From Octopus bimaculoides (lineage: Eukaryota): a stretch of 32,142 bases of DNA. The notes below the pieces were generated by a model. The model was given only the letters and a program-made list of their open reading frames with translations. It was not told where the DNA came from and searched no databases. This document shows, piece after piece, positions 1,387 to 32,142 of this stretch; the stretch's first letter is position 1; each line of letters begins with the position of its first letter. The position numbers were made by a program, and so were the translations under genes. The stretch is from positions 39,731,084 through 39,763,225 of the forward strand of contig NC_068989.1 in the NCBI RefSeq assembly GCF_001194135.2, written 5' to 3'.

Positions 1387-1989
1387 ACATTTGTATACAT
1401 GAGTGTCTTTGTATTTACTGACAGAGAAGCAAGTGCATGCAGGGTAGCTTCATCACTCTGTGTGCATCTTAAGTAAGTGTGGCTGTCAGCACTTTTGTAC
1501 ATGTAGGCTTTGTCCCAAGCTGACAATGGCCTCTCTCTTTGTAGCCGTGCCAGGCCAAACAATTTTAAAAGATGTCTCTAATCTCTGATCCGAAAATCTT
1601 TCAGAAAAGAATGCTCTGAATGTACTTATTGACATCCAGAATCATTCCCAGTCTATTGTTGCTCATACTTTCTAATGTCTACATTTAGAATGGGATTATT
1701 GATGTTCCAGTGATTACATTGTCCAACTGGATACATTTTTAGATACTAAATGTGCAACCTTGGCCTGTGTTTGACCAAGGCCTGCAGCTAGTCAAAAAAA
1801 AAAATGAACTGCAGAAATATGTAGTCTATAAATGACAACTCTGTTGTTCCTGTCATTTGTCATGAATCTTTGCAGTGGTCACAACTTTGGCATGTGTCTG
1901 TATATCATCAGTCACAGTACCCCTTAAACCCCACTAGAATAATTGTTGGAAATGAAATAAAAGAGTATTCACTCTTATCCTGTCAGTTG

Positions 1990-2480
1990 TTTCCTGAGAC
2001 AAGATGCAATGATCAGGTGTTAGCACAGCTCTGTGTTAATCCAGTAACAGAACCTGCCAGTCCACATCAGCTTGTCTTTCTAAAGGCCAACACAATGTCT
2101 GTGTGTATCCAAGATCCCATTCCAATTGCAAATTAACACTGATGTGTGAGCTGTTCCTTGAAATGTCCCCGTACATCTGAAAGAATCTGACTTCCAACTC
2201 TTGTCAAGTGCAAACAATCATGAACATGAAAACCTCATTTCCCTCTTTACTGTTCACATTCAGGACCACCTATATATCATCTGAATCCAGGAATATCAGG
2301 CTTACTTTTAGATCCAGGTATTTCCAGGAAAATACTCCCTTACCACTCAATCCAGCTGACTGAATGATGTATAAACCATTCAGTTATCCAGAATGAGAAG
2401 AAGCAACTCCATCTCAGAAATCCTGGTCTCGCTGATGCCTACTACATCTAGATGTAGAAAACAAAAATCATTGAGCAGGT
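1990..2480 (-). mobile_element. Old, decayed Tx1/L1-type LINE fragment (APE endonuclease region)
   Basis: Minus-strand remnants GISETRIS and VLICNWNGILDTHRHCVG, with nucleotide similarity to the endonuclease part of the 3291-5586 element; many stops and frameshifts. Confidence 0.55.
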
Positions 2481-2599
2481 ATCTCTGCTTCCATATACAC
2501 ACCAGGCCATGTACTTTTTGAGAGCCTGTTTTGTATATAGCTATGTTAAGCAAGCAGAAGCATTAAAAAAGTTGTGACAGGTATCTTACCCTCATTCAG

Positions 2600-2900
2600 A
2601 GGTAATTCTTTTACAGTTCCTTTGGAATGCTTCTCTGCAATCATTTTTTTTTACCAAACCTTTTTGCAATAATTATGTGGGACGCTTTTATTTCAAATGT
2701 GATAGTCGTTAGGTGTGGTTCTTACAGACGTTTCTCTTTTAATGTATTTTGGATAGTCAACACATTAAGGCAATATGGTTGATGTAGTCAAGGTGTCTGT
2801 CTATGCAGTATTGTTGGTGTGAAAAAAGCCTTGCAGTGGTCATCTTCTCACAATGTAATATTTGGCCTTTCTGATCTCCTCTTCCACCACCCTGACATGC
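2600..2900 (-). mobile_element. Possible highly decayed Tc1-like transposase N-terminal remnant
   Basis: Weak motif resemblance only (RSERPNIT.*EDD; AEKHSKGTVKN). Confidence 0.25.
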
Positions 2901-3129
2901 TCACAACCCCTTAAAACTGAATTATTTTAGGACACTTTCAAGATCCTCAAGGGGCAACTGAGCCTTGGAATTCCATTGACATTCTTTCTCAGTTCTGCTT
3001 TGGAGTAATAATAAATTTTGGTTACTAACACACCACCACCACTCATGTCAGCAACAACAATAACAACAATAATTCTTTCTAATTTGTCAAAAGACCAGCA
3101 ACTTTGAGGTGAATGTGCAAATTGATTAT

Positions 3130-3280
3130 ATTGACCCAAGTAATTAACTTGTACTTTATCTTATTGACTCCAACAGGATAGAAGGCAAAGCTGACCTTGT
3201 CTGGATTTGAACTCAGCACATAAAGTTTCAAAAGAAATGTCACTAAACATTTTGTCTGACATACAAATGATTTCACCATT
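3130..3280 (-). mobile_element. tRNA-derived SINE, family A (same family as 31191-31420), decayed
   Basis: Contains the reverse complement of the family core (GAAGGCAAAGCTGACC...ATTTGAACTCAG). Confidence 0.7.
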
Positions 3281-3290
3281 GTATCACTTT

Positions 3291-3332
3291 AGTAGTAGCA
3301 GTAATAGTAGTAGTAGTAGTAGTAGCAGCAGC

Positions 3333-3381
<49 letters not shown>

Positions 3382-5586
3382 ATAACAATAGTAATGATTT
3401 CATTTATTTGTCACAAGGGCAAAGGATGAGGGGGACAATACAAAGACAGACATAAAGTGTTGGGGTTTACGTATAATGAAATGATCAAAAAAAAAAAAAG
3501 GAAGAAAGTAAATATACACAGTATACACTGAAAAAGAAGGGACATATGCATAGCATACAAAGGTTTAACAAAGCAAAAAAAAAAGTGGCAGGGAAGATGA
3601 TAGAGATGTGGCCCTCCTGATACAGGAAGGCCTTTAGGGATAATCGAGGAACCCCACTGTCCAAGATTTTCCTCTCCAATTCCTTTTCTCCGACTCACAA
3701 GTCTACACTTAAAGAGGTACCATCCACTCTTGCCATTTTTGCAACTTTTAGCCACCTTTCAATAAACTCAGTCAAAGACAGCACTTCACTCTTCACTCTC
3801 AATTTCCTTTTCAAGTGAAACTTGAAGAAGTTAGTGAGAGCTCTACCAAAGAGGAATGTATCTGTCCTCAAGTCTTTCAGCTTTGTCCACCAAACAGCCT
3901 CTTTCACCACAGCCACCAGGCAATGGAAAACTGCCTTGCCTGCCTGATTAGAGGAGGGTGGCAGTGTGATCATCACTACAGACTCGACTGAGAGATGGAT
4001 CCATCCCACACATGACAGCAGTTGATTAACATAACCCCCAAGTCGACAATACCCGGACACTGAACGACAAATTTGTCTGACAGCACAGCCTGTAAAGTTT
4101 ATCTTAAACCAGTAACGCTCCCTGGTAAGTCCTCCAGAACAAACTAGCCAGTTCTTTCTCGTTGGTGCCCAGAGTCTCCCAGAGAATATCTGCGGCACTA
4201 ATTTCCGCAACACTAATCGCATTTCCGCGGCACTAATCCTATATAAATTTCTAAAGCAGAACATCCACTGATCCCATTGCCCAACTGGTAGAAGGTTGTG
4301 AGTACCGATGACATTTTAGGTGCCAGCTATTTAGTCTCGGTCTTTTCTTCAACCAGGACTGCAGCTCTGTCAAGGAGATAAGCTGCAGAAAGACAAGCCT
4401 CACAAAAGGACCCCACATGCACTCACCATCCAGAAATCGTTGCAGGTGGCATAACCTAAGAGTGTGTCTGCGCATTAGGAGCCATGGTATAGCTATTCCG
4501 CTACTCAGATGTTGGCAACAGACTCACTGCCTGACCATTGGAAGGTATCCCTTCCACAAGACATTAAATAAGAGACGCTCCAACCTGTCAAACAGTAACT
4601 GAAATAAGGCATGATGGTCAGGCGATAAATGAAAACAGAGGCAATGCTCTAATTGCCCTCTTCAGGGCGGCCCACCACTGGTTGTTGATGATTGCCCCCA
4701 TCAACTGTCACTAAACTAGTTCACTAATCCGGTCCCTGTCGTCTTTGCGTGCCGGAAAGAACATGTTTAACTTCCAGTTACCAGGTCTCTGTCTACGGGT
4801 CCTATCTAACTCAACTGTTCAGATCACAAACTTGTGGTCAGTGTAGCCGACCAATTTAAATTGTGGAAAAACTACACTATCCTTATCCTCTGACCTAACA
4901 AATACTCTATCTAGATATGATCAGGATGACCCATTGTGGTTGCTCCATGTCCACACTGGCACATCAGGGAAATCCAGTCGATACGTATCAAACAATTGGA
5001 AGACTCTGAGTAGGTTTCCGAGGTTTTTGCATCTCCTTCTTCTGTGTACTAGTCCTACAGAGTCCTTCTGTGCATCCAAAATCCCACTCCTGTCCCCTAC
5101 TAGTACTAAACTGCAAGACGTTACTGGGAATGTTTCTAGACACCTGAAGAGTTCTAGCCTTCCAGCCCCTGTCAGGGCATAGATGACCACCTTCACTACA
5201 TCTAGGACCACCAACCTGCCACCCAGGTCCATGAAGATTGATTTACTTCAAGATCTAAGGATTTTCAGAATAGTACTGCTACCCTGCTGCCCACTTCCAA
5301 CAGATCACATGATGAGACTATCTCATAATCATCGAAAATGGGTGCTAGTGCTTGCACATTAGAAATCTTTGTCTCACTAATTGCGGCTGCGTCTTAATTG
5401 AGTGACCTGAGGTTGTTTAACAAGTGACCTAGCTTCCAGGCTGACCCCAGGCCATGAACATTCACACACCCCACTCTGAAAAGGACCATGTTTATTGGAG
5501 AAACAAAATGGAAGAAGGTCACTTACCTTGGATTTTGAGAGGGTCAGCTGATTCAGCTGCTTTGTCTGATGCATCTGAACCAGCCG
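3291..5586 (-). mobile_element. Tx1/L1-clade LINE, 5'-truncated, RT domain deleted, (ACT)n tail, flanked by a 17-bp target-site duplication
   Basis: ORF2 starts MVLFRVGCVNVHGL (ATG at 5489), with APE motifs ISETK, SYLDRVF, YTDH and WKLN. It joins directly at ~4647 to post-RT sequence (IASVFIYRLT...LWKG...MRRHTLRL...LVAVVKEAVW...HLKRK...FIERW). 3' UTR has AATAAA (3402-3407); tail 3291-3394. CACCATTGTATCACTTT occurs at 3274-3290 and 5587-5603. Confidence 0.85.
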
Positions 5587-5603
5587 CACCATTGTATCAC
5601 TTT

Positions 5604-5622
5604 AGTAGTAATAGTAGTAGTC

Positions 5623-5664
<42 letters not shown>

Positions 5665-5672
5665 ATAATAAT
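5604..5672. repeat. (AGT)n/(AAT)n microsatellite
   Basis: Visible; directly follows the right TSD of the Tx1 element. Confidence 0.95.
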
Positions 5673-6225
5673 AACAGAATTCCCTGATGCAGTACCAGGC
5701 ACTAGCTCACATGGCTTTTGATCTTAACTACACTGTTTTTTGTCTTGGTATAAAATATGGGCTACAGCAAATATTCTGCTCAATACCACAGATTTGCTTG
5801 TCAATTGTTTGACCGTAACCAGTTGAAGATGTCCCTTAGTGACAGATCATATGTGCATCTCTGATCATGAGCAGAAGTAGTTTGGGAGCATCATAGCCAT
5901 GTGTTGAGAGGAATTCTTTGGGGTTTGAATAATTCACCTCTGGAAACATGGATGATTTGTTCATCATCCTTAAAACAACTGTTATTTAGGGATGTTTTGA
6001 GTGGGATGAGCTACTCGTCCTGGAGAAAATTTTTACTGGGCCCCACTTGCAAGGTCATGCACTGTTTATTTTGATAATGAGATCACCATGTCACACACAT
6101 ATGGTTGTGATGCATGTGCCTGGTGTACCCTTTTCAGACGGGTAGTCATGATGGCTATATTGGGCTTTGTATATTTTACCCCAGTTTCACTTTGATTGCA
6201 TGTGCTGCTCTCTCACATGATGATA
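5672..6225 (+). mobile_element. Interspersed repeat ending in an AAT-rich tail, probably a LINE 3' UTR or SINE-like element
   Basis: Recognised from memory as a common octopus repeat; no ORF; followed by an AAT/AAC-rich tail. Confidence 0.5.
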
Positions 6226-6319
6226 ATATTAATAGTAATAATTCTGACATTAACACAATAATATCATTACCAAAAACACCACCATCATCAACAAACAACA
6301 ACAATAATTATTAAAATTT

Positions 6320-6944
6320 TTGCGCAAGGCCAGCAACTTTACTTGGAAGGAGTAAGTTAATCACATTGATCCTAGTACTTGGCTGATACTCTGTGGAATT
6401 TGAACTTAGAAGAAATGCTTCTTAAACACTATTTTCTAATGCACTAACAATTCAGCCAACTCACTACTTTAACAACAACAACAACAACAACAATCATCCT
6501 TTCCACTAAAGGCACAAGGCCTGAAATTTTGGAGGGAGGGTGACAGTTGATTACACCTACCCAGTGCTCAAATGGTACTTATTTTATTGACTTTGATAGT
6601 ATGAAAAGCAAAGTCGATGTTGGTGGAATTTAAACTCAGAACATTAGGATGGACAAAATGCCACAAAGCATTTTGCTTGGTGTGCTGATGACTCTGCCAG
6701 TTTGCTGCCTTATAATTTCTAATTTTTGCACAAGGCCACCAATTTTGGGGTGGGGTTAAGTTGATTACATCAACCCCAATGCTCAACTGGTACTTATTTT
6801 ATCAACCCCAAAAGGATGAAAGGCAAGGTTGACCCCAGTGACATTTGAACTCAGAACATGATGGATGAAATGCTACAAAACATTTTGCCCAACATGCTGA
6901 TGATTCTGCCAGCTCGCAGCATTAATAATTATAACAACAACAAC

Positions 6945-6989
<45 letters not shown>

Positions 6990-7410
6990 CCATTCTACTA
7001 AAATTTGGGGAACGGGGACTAGTTTAATGCATCAACCCCAGTGTTTCACTGGTACTTCATTTATTGATCCCCAAAAGATGAAAGGCAAAGTTGACCTTGG
7101 CAGAATTTGAACTCAGAATGTAGCGACGGAGAAAATGCCACTAAGCTTTTTTCCCCGTGTGCTAACAATTCTGCCAGCTTACCATCTTATAATTTCAAAT
7201 TTTGGCACAAGGCCAATAGTTTTCGGAGAAGTGTTAAGTCAATTACATTGACCCCCAGAAGCTCAACTGGTACTTATTTTATTGACCCCACAAAAGGATG
7301 AAAAGCAAAGTCAACCCTGGCAACGTTTGAACTCAGAAGTTGAAGAAGATGGATGAAATGCCACTAGGCATTTTGCCCAGCATACTAATGATTCTTCCAG
7401 CTCGCTGCTT
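6320..7410 (-). mobile_element. Head-to-tail array of five family-A SINE copies (~6320-6470, 6495-6715, 6716-6920, 6990-7185, 7190-7410)
   Basis: The block GGTACTTATTT...AAGGATGAAAGGCAAAG...TTTGAACTCAGAA...CTGCCAGCT recurs clearly in four copies and in degenerate form in the first. Copies are separated by (AAC)n/(AAT)n tails. Confidence 0.8.
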
Positions 7411-7932
7411 TAATAATAATAATAATAATAGTAATGATGATGATGATGACGATGATGACGACGACGACGATGATGATGATGATGATGATGATGTTGTTGA
7501 TGTTGTTGTTGTTGGTAATAAATAAGAATAATAATAATAAAAATAATATCTGACATTGATATATGATCAAAAAGAAATATTAAGAGATAGTGTAAGAGAA
7601 TGAAGACAGGTCATATATTCAGCTGAATGAATCTGAGTGTGTATGCTGGTGTATGTATGTTTTGTTTGTATCTATAGGAAAAATGCCATTTGGATATGTT
7701 GAGATTCCTAATTAATCCAGAGACACTCAACAAAAATAAATATTTCAAGTTTACTTCGCCCTTACGCACATTTGGCAAACATCATTTACAATAGGAAGTT
7801 TTATTTAGTTTCTGTTGTTTGTTACCTTTTTATGTTAACTCCGTCAGTTTTATTTGGCAAATGGTTTAAGAATAGATATCTTTTTTTGTCTGTTTATTTG
7901 TTTATTGCTTTTCTGTATTTCTCTTCTGTTAG

Positions 7933-10155: not shown

Positions 10156-10157
<2 letters not shown>

Positions 10158-10200
<43 letters not shown>

Positions 10201-15947: not shown

Positions 15948-16482
15948 NNNNNNNNNNNNNNNNNNNNNNNNNNNNNNNNNNNNNNNNNNNNNNNNNNNNN
16001 NNNNNNNNNNNNNNNNNNNNNNNNNNNNNNNNNNNNNNNNNNNNNNNNNNNNNNNNNNNNNNNNNNNNNNNNNNNNNNNNNNNNNNNNNNNNNNNNNNNN
16101 NNNNNNNNNNNNNNNNNNNNNNNNNNNNNNNNNNNNNNNNNNNNNNNNNNNNNNNNNNNNNNNNNNNNNNNNNNNNNNNNNNNNNNNNNNNNNNNNNNNN
16201 NNNNNNNNNNNNNNNNNNNNNNNNNNNNNNNNNNNNNNNNNNNNNNNNNNNNNNNNNNNNNNNNNNNNNNNNNNNNNNNNNNNNNNNNNNNNNNNNNNNN
16301 NNNNNNNNNNNNNNNNNNNNNNNNNNNNNNNNNNNNNNNNNNNNNNNNNNNNNNNNNNNNNNNNNNNNNNNNNNNNNNNNNNNNNNNNNNNNNNNNNNNN
16401 NNNNNNNNNNNNNNNNNNNNNNNNNNNNNNNNNNNNNNNNNNNNNNNNNNNNNNNNNNNNNNNNNNNNNNNNNNNNNNNNNN
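15948..16482. other. Assembly gap (535 N)
   Basis: N run flanked by (AT)n. Confidence 1.
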
Positions 16483-17157: not shown

Positions 17158-17602
17158 NNNNNNNNNNNNNNNNNNNNNNNNNNNNNNNNNNNNNNNNNNN
17201 NNNNNNNNNNNNNNNNNNNNNNNNNNNNNNNNNNNNNNNNNNNNNNNNNNNNNNNNNNNNNNNNNNNNNNNNNNNNNNNNNNNNNNNNNNNNNNNNNNNN
17301 NNNNNNNNNNNNNNNNNNNNNNNNNNNNNNNNNNNNNNNNNNNNNNNNNNNNNNNNNNNNNNNNNNNNNNNNNNNNNNNNNNNNNNNNNNNNNNNNNNNN
17401 NNNNNNNNNNNNNNNNNNNNNNNNNNNNNNNNNNNNNNNNNNNNNNNNNNNNNNNNNNNNNNNNNNNNNNNNNNNNNNNNNNNNNNNNNNNNNNNNNNNN
17501 NNNNNNNNNNNNNNNNNNNNNNNNNNNNNNNNNNNNNNNNNNNNNNNNNNNNNNNNNNNNNNNNNNNNNNNNNNNNNNNNNNNNNNNNNNNNNNNNNNNN
17601 NN
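17158..17602. other. Assembly gap (445 N)
   Basis: N run. Confidence 1.
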
Positions 17603-19236: not shown

Positions 19237-20329
19237 TATATATATAATATATATATATAAATTATATCACAAAATGGCAGCTTACTCTCTATTTGTGTTT
19301 TGCCTGGCATCTGATTGGAATTATATGAGGAAGAAAGTGCATCAATGCAAACTTCTTTGTTCTGGGAATTTGTAAGAATATGTGCTTGTCTTTGAGTGTC
19401 TATCAGAAAGTAGTAATCAAATTTTTTTTTTTTTTGTTTTGTTAGTATTTACATATATAGGGAATGATATGCATACAGGCATGAGTTATCATTTTGACAT
19501 CCATCACTTTTATCATTACCAACATCCATTGATATCTATCATATTCTTTCTTTCTAACATTACTTCTTTCATCATTCATTGTTGATGTGCATCATTCTCT
19601 CTCTCTCTTTGTCTTGTTTACTCTCTCCTGTCACTCTCTTTTGTTTCACTTTTTCCATCACCCTGACTCCTTCAAATCACTTTCTTTTCCTTTCCTCTCA
19701 TTCAATCACCATGTCAACAAACAGCTTATACCTATCACTGCATCTCTTCCATTGCTGCCACCCTCTATAACCTTCTTACCTTTCTTATTTTTACTATCAT
19801 GCTTCCATTGCTACCCCTCTTATCATCCACATGTCTTTAGCACTGTTTCTCTTTTATTGTTACCTTTCTGTAACTCTTTTGCACCTGTTTCTGTCTTCCT
19901 TCCACTGCTACTTTTTGAATCACCCTCTCTCCTTATCACTGTCTCTCTTCCATTACTTCCCCTTCTGTCGCCCTCTTGCCTCTTTCACAGTTTCTCATTG
20001 CTACTCCCTCTATCAAACTCTTTCTCACTCCTATTTTTGCATTTCCCCATCATAATCTTTCTCCTGTCATCCTTTACCCTAATCTTCTCTCTTTCATCAA
20101 ATTAACAAATCCTAGGTTATTAAGTATAATTGCATGTTCTTAGCTAAGAACTTCTCTTGTAACTGTCTCTTTTAGGAGACTGTATTGCTGCTACTGTTTC
20201 CTTAATCAAGCCCAAACTGTATTTCATCTAAGCTAAATACAAATGATTAAAATTCAGTAGTCTTCATCCTTTTTCATTCTTTCCATGTATATAATGCTGA
20301 TAATAATAATAATGATGATGATGATGATG

Positions 20330-20371
<42 letters not shown>

Positions 20372-20393
20372 GTAATAATAATAATAATAATAA

Positions 20394-22942
20394 TCATACC
20401 ACTTTTTTGCTCTGTCAGGTCCATACTTGTTGCAAAGTGTCCAATGGACAATCCTTGCTATGTTGTCATGACGTCTCTTATATTCTTTCTGGGCTAGTGG
20501 CGTACATTGACTGGTAATATGCCATACGGTCACACCATTTTGTCCACAAATTCTGCACTTATCACTTTCTGATGTGTTGTCTATTTTGTATTTGTTGTAA
20601 TTCATTCTTAATGCTTTGCTCTTGGGCAGCACAGATTAGAGCCTCCGTTTCTGGTTTTAAATCACTTTTAGTCGTCCTTAGCCATCGTTTTTCTCTGTTT
20701 GTCTTACCTTCAACATCCCTATGAAATTGTCCATGCATTCTTTTCTTTATCCATCTATTTTCAGTTTTATTCATTCTCAAATCCTTGTACAGTGCTTTAT
20801 CTTTGCAAGCTTCCATCCTACACAAGCCTGACCTTCTTACTTCCAATAATAGCAGTTCTGCGGCATTTTTTACATACCATGCTATGTTGTTTTCTTCTGC
20901 TCTAATGCTGTGTTCACATCCAGTCAGTCCTCTTCCCCCTCTTTTTCTTGGTACATATAGTCTGTCTATGTCACATTTTGGGTGGAGTATCCCATATCTA
21001 GTCAGCAACTTCCTTGTCTTTCCATCTAAGCTGTTTAGTTTATCTACTGTCCATGCAATTACCCCTGCTCCATATCTAAGGAGTGAAACCTCCCAGGTGT
21101 TGATAACTGCTTCGATCTTATTCCGTCTGTTTAATTTCGACTTAAGGATCCTTCTTAGTCTGTGCAAGTACTCCACCTTAAATTTTTCTGTCATTTTTTT
21201 GTCCATCAATTTATCTATTTCCAAAATCCCCAAGCACTAACAGCACATCTCTTCTATCTGCTTAATAACCTCCCCCAACAGTATCGTTAGTCTGTCCATA
21301 CATTTGATTTCGCCTCTCTTCAAGACTAACACACCACACACTCTCAGTATGAACTCCATTCTGATATCAGTACTGAAGGTATACACCGTATCAATGAGGG
21401 AACTGACTTGGAATTCATCTTTACCATAAAGTTTGAGGTCATTCATGAATAACAAGTGGTTGACATTTTGTTGGCGGCTTTTGAATATATACCTAGCCTT
21501 TGCTTTCCTCGAAATCAGTGTTAGTGGTATCATGCACAGTACAAAGATCAGTGGGGATAGGCAGTCCTCTTGGAAATTGCCTCTCCTAATTTCTACTATC
21601 CCTAAACTTCTTCCATATGCTGTCAGTTCCATCCTTCATTTCACCATACTTTTTCCAAGCAATCACTCAACATTCAATGCAATACCAAATAGGTTCATAC
21701 ATTCCATAATCCAAGAATGTGGGATCATATTCTATGCCTTACGATAATCGATCCATAACATGGCTAAGTTACTTTTCCTCCTCTTGCAGTCTCTAAGTAC
21801 AGTTTTGTCTACCAGGTTTTGATCCTTGGTACCTCTGCACTTACGCTTGCAACCCTTCTGCACATGTGGCAGGACACCATTTTTTTCCAGATCACCATGC
21901 ATTTACTCTGTGACTATTCCAGTCAATAATTTCCACATAAGTGGCAAGCAGGATATTGGCTTGTAATTGTCTACTGTATCACCTTTTTCAATGTTTTTCA
22001 ATCACAGTACTGTCCTACCCAGTGTCAACTACTCTGGTGTTACTTGGTCAGCATTTAACAAGGTATTGAGTTGCATAGCTATTCGTGCATGACATTCAAC
22101 AAATCTTTTGATCCAGTAACGTTGAAATGTATCTGGTCCAGGGACCTTTCGATTGCCCATTTTTATGCTGATTTCCTTCACTTCCCTAACTGAAACGACT
22201 ATTTTTGCCTGTTTTGGACAGACTACTGTTTGTTTCAGTTCTTGCAACTATTCAGCATCCTTCTTGTACTCCTTGTCTTTGTTCTAGATGTCACTCCAAA
22301 ACCTTTGACTTTAAATGTTATCTGGTATCAACTTTTCATCTGCACACTCTCCATTTATTTCTTTGTAGAATCTCTTCTGATCTACTTTGAATAACCTATT
22401 CTGCTGGTATCATTTCATTCTTACCATCTTTGATTTCTTTACAATGAAGCACTGTTTCAGTTCCTCCATTACCACTTTCAGGCCCTTTCTTTCAATATCA
22501 TACTTCCTGTTTTATGATTCAGTGCGACCATGAAATAGAGAATAGGAAACCAGACATAGTGTTAATTGAGAAAGAAAGCAAATGATGCTGGATCATAGAT
22601 ATAGCATGCCCAGTTAACAACAAGGTATGCGATAAGGAAGAAAGAAAAGTTGATAGATATAACAGGTTAGCTTGGGAGGTTAAACAGTTGTGGTTGCTGA
22701 AAAAGGTGGTAGCAGTACAAATAATTGTCGGAGCCCTGGGAATTGTGAGTAAAATTCTTGAGAAGTACATAGAACAAATAGGGGCTGCAATAAGGGTGGA
22801 GCACTTGCAGAAAATCGCACTGCATGGTACCGCTCAAATACTCTGGATGGTGCCTGAAAAATAAGGGGTGTTACCTTAGTTCATTAGTAGTGAACAGCTG
22901 ACACTGTAGTACATCTCCAGCATTAGAAGCTGTGCAAAGACA

Positions 22943-23001
<59 letters not shown>
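20394..23001. mobile_element. Dong/R4-clade RLE LINE with a 5' inversion: inverted body 20394-22508 (-), 3' end 22510-22945 (+), (TAA)n tail 22946-23001
   Basis: Minus strand: [21 protein letters not shown] motifs (IRRGNFQEDCLSPLIF, NHLLFMNDLKLYGK), LHPKCDIDRLYVPRKRGGRGL, zinc knuckle CRICGQNGVTVWHITSQC...RRHDNIARIVHW...KKWY. Plus strand: FMIQCDHEIENRKPDIVL...IIDIACP...IIVGALG...LQKIALHGTAQIL*. Flanked on the left by (TAA)n at 20301-20393. Confidence 0.88.
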
Positions 23002-23275: not shown

Positions 23276-24254
23276 TAAAGAACAGTGTTGCTGTCATGTT
23301 GCATGTGACTTGTGTTGTGGTATGCTATTTCTGCATGTGCATTTGGTATAGAGTTAATTCTTATCATTAACAATTAAATGTCGTCATTTCTATGAACAAC
23401 AAAGGAAAGATGTTTACACTATTAAGATATATGAGATTTATATGGATTTGGTATAACAGCAGTCGCTGTCATGTCTTTCTTTGAATTAGCTGGTTCGGAT
23501 GTATTGCAGTCACCACAACCACCATCGTTGTCATCATCGCTGTCATCGTTGACCACTGTCTTGGTGCCACAGACACGACTCTGGTTTGCTTTCTGGTTCT
23601 CTGCTCCTTTTTGCTATCTGCTGGTTAGTAGCTAAAATGCTCTAAATATACAACCAATGTTCTTCATAGAAAAAATACACTAAAAATTTAATCCTGTTTC
23701 ACCAGAGGTTTAAGTGGTTGGTGTTTTGATGACGTCAGCAATATTTGAACAAATTACATTTCAGTTACTTAGTTTGTTTGTTTTTTTGCATTGGATACAG
23801 TGATCTAAGTTTGATTTCTAAGTTTTTCTGTGACTGTCAGATATTCCTGCTATACCAGTCTTAATTTCAATTATTCTATCACATACTATGATTATCACAA
23901 TTACATTATTTCTCCATCTCTGTTCCTGCAATATAACCAACTTTGCTAACCTTTGTGTAGTTATGCCTGGTGTATAAATGTTATAAGTTCATAGCCACCA
24001 GTTTAATAATGTAAAAAAAAAAAACACAATCATCATCACCACCACCGATATCATCATCATTATTGTGATGGTGATCATCATCATTGTTATGAGGCACATA
24101 AAACCAGCATCATCAGTATGGTTACTACCATCTTTTCCATCATCATCACCACCACTACCATTATCATCGTCATCATCGTCATCATCATCACCACCACCAC
24201 CACATCATCATTCGCATTATATTATCATCATATCATCATCATCATCATCATCAT

Positions 24255-24650
24255 ATTATTATTATTATTATTGTTCAGTAGTTTTATTTTTATAACGTGT
24301 TTTCACTTCACTACCGAGCGCAGCTCTGTGTGCCTTGGGTATGTGCTGTGGTTTGCTGTGGTACTCTTATGGTTACTGTATTGAAAGTGTTTTGTGTAGG
24401 ATGTGTGCAGTGCCCAGTAGTGCAATTTTCTGTATGTTATATATATTTGTAAGTCCTGGTGTTTTTGTTGTGTATTTGTCTGAATATTTTTTTATTATAC
24501 CTAAGGCACCTACTATGATAGGAATTGTTTCTGTTTTTAGATTCCACATTTGAGTTACCTCTATTTCCAGGTCTTTGTATTTTGAAAGTTTTTTCCATTT
24601 CATTTAGAGAAACGTTGTCATCTGCTGGTATTGATCCATCAATTAGAAAG
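24255..24650 (-). mobile_element. 5'-truncated 3' end of a second Dong/R4-type family, flanked by (TAA)n on both sides
   Basis: FLIDGSIPADDNVS...EKLSKYKDLEIEVTQMWNLKTETIPIIVGALG...IQKIALLGTAHIL; (ATT)n at ~24255-24272 and 24662-24760. Confidence 0.82.
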
Positions 24651-24687
24651 CTTTTTTTTCTTTTATTATTATTATTATTATTATTAA

Positions 24688-24761
<74 letters not shown>

Positions 24762-25458: not shown

Positions 25459-25468
25459 NNNNNNNNNN
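25459..25468. other. Assembly gap (10 N)
   Basis: N run after (TA)n. Confidence 1.
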
Positions 25469-31774: not shown

Positions 31775-31816
<42 letters not shown>

Positions 31817-31829
31817 ATAGTAGTAGTAA

Positions 31830-31860
<31 letters not shown>

Positions 31861-32142
31861 CCTAATAGTAGTAGTCATAGTTGTAATAGTAGTTGTCGTA
31901 GTAGTAGTAGTGATTGTGATGGTGGTGGTGGTAGTAGTAATAGTGACTGTGTGGTGGTAGTAGTGGTGGTGGTTGAGGTGGTAGTAGTAGGAGTAGTAAT
32001 GGCAATGGTGATAGTTGTAGTAGTAGTACTAGTGTGGTGGTAGTAGTAGTAGTGATAAAAGATGGTAGTAGAAGTTGCAATAGTAATAGTAGTAGAAGCT
32101 CTAGCAGTTGTTGGTGTTGTGGCCATAATAATAGTGGTATTG
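31775..32142. repeat. Long degenerate (GTA)n/(GTG)n trinucleotide tract at the start of the next intron
   Basis: Visible; source of the poly-V/poly-T ORFs. Confidence 0.9.

Follow-up and report, generated by a model that had tools for sequence, protein, structure and literature searches.

The window analyzed here, by which we mean the whole 32,142-nt stretch of Octopus bimaculoides DNA (RefSeq assembly GCF_001194135.2, contig NC_068989.1, positions 39,731,084 to 39,763,225 of the forward strand), contains at 20300-23001 a copy of a Dong/R4-like long interspersed nuclear element (LINE) in which the 5′ part of the open reading frame (ORF) lies on the opposite strand to the 3′ part. Four abutting pieces make up this region, in the order repeat, inverted LINE part, forward LINE part, and 3′ untranslated region (UTR) with (ATA)19, and no N gaps are present within 20300-23001. 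The first piece is the upstream target microsatellite (20300-20394, plus strand), an imperfect repeat that reads (ATA)4(ATG)6(ATA)13 ACAGTA (ATA)n in plus-strand TAA polarity, and that Tandem Repeats Finder (TRF) reports as 20300-20398, period 3, (ATA)33, with 91% matches. The second is the inverted 5′ segment of the ORF (20394..22511, minus strand), which corresponds to codons 375-1082 plus 2 nt in the numbering of P0001, the best full-length relative (1217 aa). The third is the forward 3′ segment (22510..22864, plus strand; codons 1101-1217 in the same numbering), and the fourth is a 3′ UTR of 80 nt (22865..22944, plus strand) with, behind it, a perfect (ATA)19 at 22945..23001 on the plus strand (TRF, 19 copies, 100% matches), which is the (TAA)n tail of the element fused with the downstream part of the target microsatellite. 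In the TRF results the two flanking repeats agree in their plus-strand polarity. An earlier note on this DNA had described a 2.1-kb antisense segment ending at 20394 against (TAA)n, and a sense segment running from 22510 to the 3′ UTR and a (TAA)n tail, and both descriptions were borne out by translation, tblastn and TRF.

Translated on the minus strand from 22511 to 20396, the inverted segment opens NRKYDIERKGLK and closes RHDNIARIVHWTLCNKYGPDRAKKWY, and is interrupted by 11 in-frame stops and by one frameshift near 20609-20632. Using P0001 as the query against the window, tblastn aligned residues 375-1019 to 22511-20580 and residues 1007-1081 to 20623-20399. The 3′-most end of this segment (X, ...TGGTATGA) adjoins the upstream repeat, and its 5′-most end (Y, AAC AGG AAG...) sits at the inversion junction. 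Within the inverted segment we identified the reverse transcriptase (RT) domain RVT_1 of Pfam (21354..21992, minus strand; E=4e-8, residues 174-386 of the stitched translation), and the N-terminal half of the restriction-like endonuclease (RLE) module, which spans 20465..20557 and comprises a CCHC zinc knuckle, CRICGQNGVTVWHITSQC (20557..20504, minus strand), and an RHD motif (20473..20465, minus strand). The catalytic half of the module, marked by the KPD motif at 22547-22555, is located in the forward segment, and has been parted from the CCHC/RHD half by the inversion. Plus-strand translation of 22511-22861 gives FMIQCDHEIENRKPD...ILWMVPEK, with an internal TGA at 22583-22585 and the natural stop codon, TAA, at 22862-22864. 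The 3′ UTR aligns with two related loci, L089 and L090, with blastn of the forward segment to these loci extending to query position 419 of 434, and its core (AGCTGACA...AGCTGTG) is common to L001 and L002 as compared by eye. At the inversion junction itself (22510..22511, no strand assigned), the bases TT are assignable to either segment, as they could come from the inverted part, where GTT is its Asn codon in reverse complement, or from the forward part, where they would be the final T of GAT and the T that opens TTT.

Our protein search with the stitched minus-strand translation recovered 445 relatives. The full-length relatives encode a single ORF of 1125-1217 aa, with RVT_1 (E=1e-23 to 1e-27) as the only Pfam domain, other than a weak zf-RVT in a few. 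No apurinic/apyrimidinic endonuclease (APE) domain (Exo_endo_phos) was present among the precomputed Pfam hits of 120 relatives, and three full-length relatives gave no match to Exo_endo_phos at E<=1, the window copy itself lacking codons 1-374. Among proteins of solved structure, those of R2 retrotransposons are the closest in sequence (PDB, E=2e-27), and R2 proteins are also the best fold match to the AlphaFold model of the relative P0013 (predicted local distance difference test score 84; E=3e-35, about 1000-1080 aligned columns), with human L1 ORF2p a poorer match to the same model (E=2e-21). This fold alignment probably takes in the C-terminal endonuclease region. The CCHC, RHD and KPD motifs, all of which are found in the window copy, are invariant across 36-48 relatives together with the acidic and lysine positions that follow KPD; invariant residues in the relatives include C1029, C1032, H1041, C1046, R1057, H1058 and D1059. 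In addition, the relatives share an N-terminal conserved block (W95...W131...Q147), outside the span of the window copy, that resembles the Myb/SANT-like domain described at the N-terminus of Dong-type elements, the target of which is (TAA)n (PMC7998251). Examination of 82 related loci demonstrated sense (TAA)n downstream of the element in 32/82 and upstream in 20/82, with (TTA)n alone in 3/82; L002 has canonical (TAA)n at both sides of its element, and relatives end in (TAA)n as the window copy does.

Because of the R2-like fold, the lack of an APE domain and the orientation-specific (TAA)n flanks, the family is classed as a Dong/R4-like, RLE-type, (TAA)n-specific LINE, with R2 structures as the reference comparison. 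The earlier note had likewise proposed an RLE-type, microsatellite-targeting family, and this is supported by the null result for APE at E<=1, by the R2 fold and by the sense (TAA)n flanks. The features of the family are those of the Dong/R4 clade, i.e., one ORF (~1130 aa) in which the RT is central and a CCHC motif and RLE lie at the C-terminus, no APE, a (TAA)n tail, and orientation-specific insertion into (TAA)n. Dong was described from Bombyx mori, and R4/Dong elements are present in insects, molluscs and cnidarians (PMC7998251). We also observed that L002 (2862-8880) and L088 (1558-16987) carry head-to-tail Dong-like copies of different subfamilies, all in the same orientation and with (TAA)n between them, which form arrays within microsatellites, and that a related metagenome contig, L033, carries telomere-like (CCCTAA)n at its 3′ end in place of (TAA)n.

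The two segments of the window copy share both their family and their degree of decay. P0001 is the nearest full-length relative of each, and the identity profiles of the two segments over 69 full-length relatives are correlated (Spearman 0.69). Of the columns conserved in at least 90% of relatives, 43/219 (19.6%) are altered in the inverted segment vs 7/34 (20.6%) in the forward segment (Fisher p=1), and nucleotide identity to L090 is 71.8% (69.5-74.7% in 400-nt windows) vs 76.3% (p=0.06), a divergence comparison of limited power given that the forward part has just 117 codons. By blastn, the inverted part matches L090 at 71% over 1988 nt and the forward part matches L089 and L090 at 75-76%, and stop codons occur at similar density, with 11 in 706 codons of the inverted part vs 1 in 117 codons of the forward part (Poisson P=0.46). 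These nucleotide relatives came from a second protein search using the forward part alone, which found closer short ORFs (69-75% identity), the loci of which provided a colinear, uninverted copy in L090 and two more copies in L089. The earlier note had held that parts differing in divergence or subfamily would point to independent insertions; no such difference was found. A separate observation on L090 is that ~3.7 kb of other sequence at 2063-5800, presumably a nested insertion, interrupts the ORF of its colinear copy.

Comparison with the uninverted copies also fixes what is missing between the two segments. The linker absent from the window copy is EKAPEGVIENERCKILWD, E1083-D1100 in P0001, which occupies 18 codon positions in all relatives and is bracketed by the invariant W1081/Y1082 and W1099/D1100. 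The colinear copies in L090 and L089 read ...TGG TAT GAC CAT AAA CCT GAA GGT GTC ATA GAG AAT GAA CGT GCA GAA ATT CTG TGG GAT TTT ATG ATT CAG TGC GAC CAT... in this region, with L090 uninterrupted across both breakpoints of the window copy, and in the window copy the inverted part stops where this linker starts and gives way to the repeat, with the forward part opening at the last T of GAT. Since L090 reads straight through, the loss is fixed at exactly 51 nt (17 codons) and the two segments are neighbours in the element; the figure is 51 nt rather than 18 full codons since the window copy keeps 2 nt of the first codon and 1 nt of the last. The earlier note had estimated the missing linker at about 17 codons from motifs that are nearly adjacent in related ORFs, and its estimate agrees with this figure. 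At the left junction, T20394 is compatible both with the phase of the repeat and with the element as aligned to L090, i.e., a putative microhomology of 1 nt, and at the inversion junction the putative microhomology is 0-2 nt (TT at 22510-22511, in alignments to L090, L089 and L001).

These findings bear directly on whether one event or two produced the locus. Two independent insertions would require a minus-strand copy that later lost its 3′ end and tail, and an adjoining 5′-truncated copy on the plus strand. Stacking of copies is a habit of this family, as the tandem arrays of L002 and L088 within single microsatellites show, and an unrelated Dong-like fragment lies just 1.4 kb away in the window. 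However, the inverted part lacks both a 3′ end and a tail, and its orientation relative to (TAA)n is one that the family does not use, so that it is not an ordinary insertion; a 3′-truncated, tail-less copy in the disfavoured orientation would be needed, and its deletion would have to stop precisely at a repeat whose polarity is wrong for the tail of the minus copy. In addition, the truncation points of the two copies would have to fall within 51 nt of each other in a ~3.6-kb element, and the chance of independent breakpoints within 18 codons in an ORF of 1217 codons is roughly 3%, a figure that excludes the further need for such a truncated copy in the wrong orientation. Taken with the same decay and the same nearest relatives of the two parts, we consider two insertions very unlikely.

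A colinear, 5′-truncated copy (codons 375-1217) that inserted normally, and in which the first 2.1 kb was later flipped with the loss of 51 nt, either by two breaks with end joining or by template switching during replication, would yield a final sequence identical to the one observed. The borders of microsatellites are fragile sites, and a copy in which ~20% of conserved residues have changed is old enough to have allowed time for such a rearrangement. This route would, however, need one of its breakpoints to fall within 1-2 nt of the boundary between element and microsatellite, because no inverted repeat tract was carried to the internal junction. We found no inverted (TTA)n there, nor repeat sequence of any kind, and the left repeat keeps its plus-strand TAA polarity, the same as that of the tail, up to 20394. 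An inversion reaching outside the element, which the earlier note had named as evidence for a later genomic event, is thus not what the breakpoints indicate. With no inverted repeats at the two breakpoints to mediate recombination, a later inversion is in our view unlikely.

The arrangement is best explained as one dead-on-arrival insertion of a Dong/R4-like LINE that suffered a 5′ inversion and a 51-nt deletion during integration by a twin-priming-type route, a reading to which we give a probability of about 0.75. Twin priming was proposed for L1 by Ostertag and Kazazian in 2001, in the form in which that study is summarized by later papers (PMC2912911, PMC4245944). In that model one DNA end primes on the 3′ tail of the RNA and the other primes internally, and the two cDNAs are joined at a short homology; the marks left behind are an inverted 5′ part beside the upstream target and microhomologies at the junctions (PMC2912911, PMC4245944). 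The earlier note had recognized the layout as the twin-priming signature known from L1, in agreement with these papers, and its reading of the window copy as twin-priming-like is supported, as each of the refuting tests proposed in that note and run here favoured a single event of the twin-priming type. Like an L1 5′ inversion, the window copy has the order target, inverted 5′ part, forward 3′ part and tail, with a small loss at the inversion, and its parts are neighbours in the element, its junctions may carry short microhomologies and its product is non-functional. Unlike L1, which has an APE endonuclease and a poly(A) tail and makes staggered nicks with a target-site duplication of 10-20 bp, the window element combines an RLE with a (TAA)n tail and targets a microsatellite.

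Applied to this locus, the route would begin with the element endonuclease nicking the bottom strand of the (TAA)n microsatellite, whereupon the (TTA)n 3′ end would anneal to the (UAA)n that ends the element RNA and prime a first cDNA, which would copy the 3′ UTR and then the ORF as far as the F1101 codon (window position 22510). Before this first cDNA went further, the top strand would be broken too, and its ...ATAAT-3′ end would anneal to that RNA internally, at ...UGGUAUGA, a site that lies 51 nt upstream of the end of the first cDNA. A second cDNA primed there would extend 2.1 kb towards the 5′ end of the RNA and halt at codon N375. With the RNA removed, the two cDNA 3′ ends would be joined at the 0-2 nt microhomology (TT) and the gaps filled, and the product would be the target, the inverted 5′ part, the forward 3′ part and the tail that we observe. 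The long, A/T-rich end of a microsatellite, by pairing with many A/U-rich sites in the RNA, may ease this reaction, although this is speculation. What the sequences show directly is the layout with its breakpoints, the polarity of the repeats, the shared family and decay of the two parts and the RLE-type architecture of the family. The order of the nicks, the polymerase that would extend the second primer and the joining of the ends are read from the layout, as they are for L1. The break splits the endonuclease module, with CCHC/RHD on one side and KPD on the other, and codons 1-374 are absent; judged from its sequence, the window copy could never have been active, and has since decayed neutrally, with ~20% of near-invariant residues changed and 12 in-frame stops in total.

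Snap-back of the cDNA, in which the 3′ end of the first cDNA folds back and copies itself, is the one documented route that joins antisense element sequence to the upstream target in RLE-mediated insertions, and generates the antisense 5′ junctions seen with R2-protein insertions in human cells (PMC11371274). The snap-back junctions of these R2-protein (PRINT) insertions resemble the window copy in that target-primed reverse transcription started by an RLE has left antisense element sequence attached to the upstream target (PMC11371274). In PRINT snap-back, however, it is the cDNA that is copied, leaving an inverted duplication, whereas the antisense part of the window copy does not overlap the sense part (codons 375-1082 and 1101-1217) and would need priming on RNA from the other DNA end. 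We found no inverted repeat of more than 23 nt (74% complementary) between the two parts, and since no inverted duplication links them, snap-back is ruled out as the source of this copy.

Several points weigh against the twin-priming reading. At 1 nt and 0-2 nt the microhomologies are short, and they are judged on relatives just 72-76% identical to the window copy rather than on a consensus of its own family, and our calls of them are therefore provisional. Since the target is a microsatellite, a target-site duplication is unreadable. The evidence comes from a single copy: no second 5′-inverted copy was found among ~24 related genomic copies in seven large-contig loci (L002, L083-L088), and no mixed-strand layout was found in 80 metagenome contigs, a biased sample of mostly full-length elements. 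With no second example in these ~24 copies and 80 contigs, 5′ inversion is not frequent in those other genomes, at roughly fewer than one copy in eight. Work on the enzyme class also leads to a different expectation. In R2 the second nick is offset by just 2 bp and the nicked 3′ end is kept away from the RT active site (PMC11601368), and second-strand events are thought to come after first-strand synthesis (PMC6895275), so that twin priming is unexpected for RLE enzymes. Finally, the window is a gapped scaffold, in which runs of N occupy 15948-16482, 17158-17602 and 25459-25468.

With these gaps, and with a repetitive family, a short-read assembler could have joined two copies, or flipped a contig, at 22509/22510 or in the left repeat. 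The left junction lies in a 95-nt microsatellite, beyond the span of short reads, and exact look-ups of seven ORF variants of the window in the protein collection returned no second assembly in which the arrangement could be seen again. However, the internal junction has no gap or low-complexity stretch, and an old copy that is ~25% diverged from its relatives would present mostly unique k-mers to the assembler. A random chimera would, moreover, be unlikely to give breakpoints 51 nt apart in the element with matching orientation and equal decay, and we regard an assembly artefact as improbable. As a general feature of the window, AT/TA dinucleotide repeats flank the N runs, and the scaffold was probably built from short reads.

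In the incomplete literature that we searched, no natural case of twin priming in R2, R4, Dong or other RLE elements is described, with passing citations only. To our knowledge, 5′ inversion is treated as an outcome nearly specific to L1. Cell assays showed that 5′ inversion depends on both the LINE and the host, as it was seen nearly only for L1 in human cells, with one case for Nimb-2_DR and none for ZfL2-1 (PMC4245944). The advance made here is a modest one, i.e., a known type of scar in a class of LINE where it is not documented in the literature searched, seen in one old copy in an unverified assembly. As to whether R4/Dong-type RLE LINEs are capable of true twin priming, we lean slightly towards the view that they are. 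If the reading is true, the window copy would stand as the first natural case beyond the APE-type LINEs, and would imply that the top strand can be opened in the RLE class before the first-strand cDNA is complete, with the A/T-rich 3′ end of a microsatellite serving as the second primer on an internal RNA site. A clean RLE example would show that priming of the second DNA end on RNA occurs in RLE elements too, which bears on the question of at what point, and in what way, R2-like elements cut and use the second strand (PMC6895275, PMC11601368). It would also add a class of by-product to watch for in R2-based gene-insertion tools, and bear on which aberrant junctions may be expected from these (PMC11371274). 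As a single old copy, the case amounts to a lead that a genome-wide census could follow rather than to a result.

Ordinary Dong/R4 copies are full-length or 5′-truncated, as in L002, L083-L088 and a fragment at 24379-24664 of the window, in contrast to the 5′-inverted copy described here. Two groups of candidates for further inversions were rejected. The apparent inversion in L089 is instead a 2-kb genomic inverted duplication with 97% identity between its arms, and relative proteins that are short at the C-terminus, considered as hidden inversion junctions, are ordinary frameshifted or contig-end products. The L089 arms (1712-3700 and 5268-7262) are palindromic, each holding the same internally deleted Dong-like copy: its 5′ piece runs into the final ~240 nt of the stretch that the window carries in inverted form and then into the 3′ part, with ~1.6 kb missing.

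Searches of the window by blastn and tblastn found no other copies, save the unrelated Dong-like 3′ fragment at 24379-24664 (minus strand), which belongs to a different family (~40% protein identity) and ends ...IPIIVGALGIIKK...IQKIALLGTAHILHKTLSIQ. The repeats of this fragment lie at 24663-24759 and 24138-24272, and its layout is the ordinary one on the minus strand, i.e., (TAA)n target, 5′-truncated element, 3′ UTR, short (ATA)6 tail and (ATG)n, so that the fragment serves as an internal control for normal insertion. Long trinucleotide microsatellites are unusually dense across the window, for example at 3290-3381 (TAG), 5603-5664 (TAG), 6923-6989 (TAA), 7434-7502 (ATG), 10157-10200 (TCA) and 31775-32095 (GTA, 107 units), and recognisable Dong-like sequence stands beside microsatellites at 20300-23001 and 24138-24759 only.

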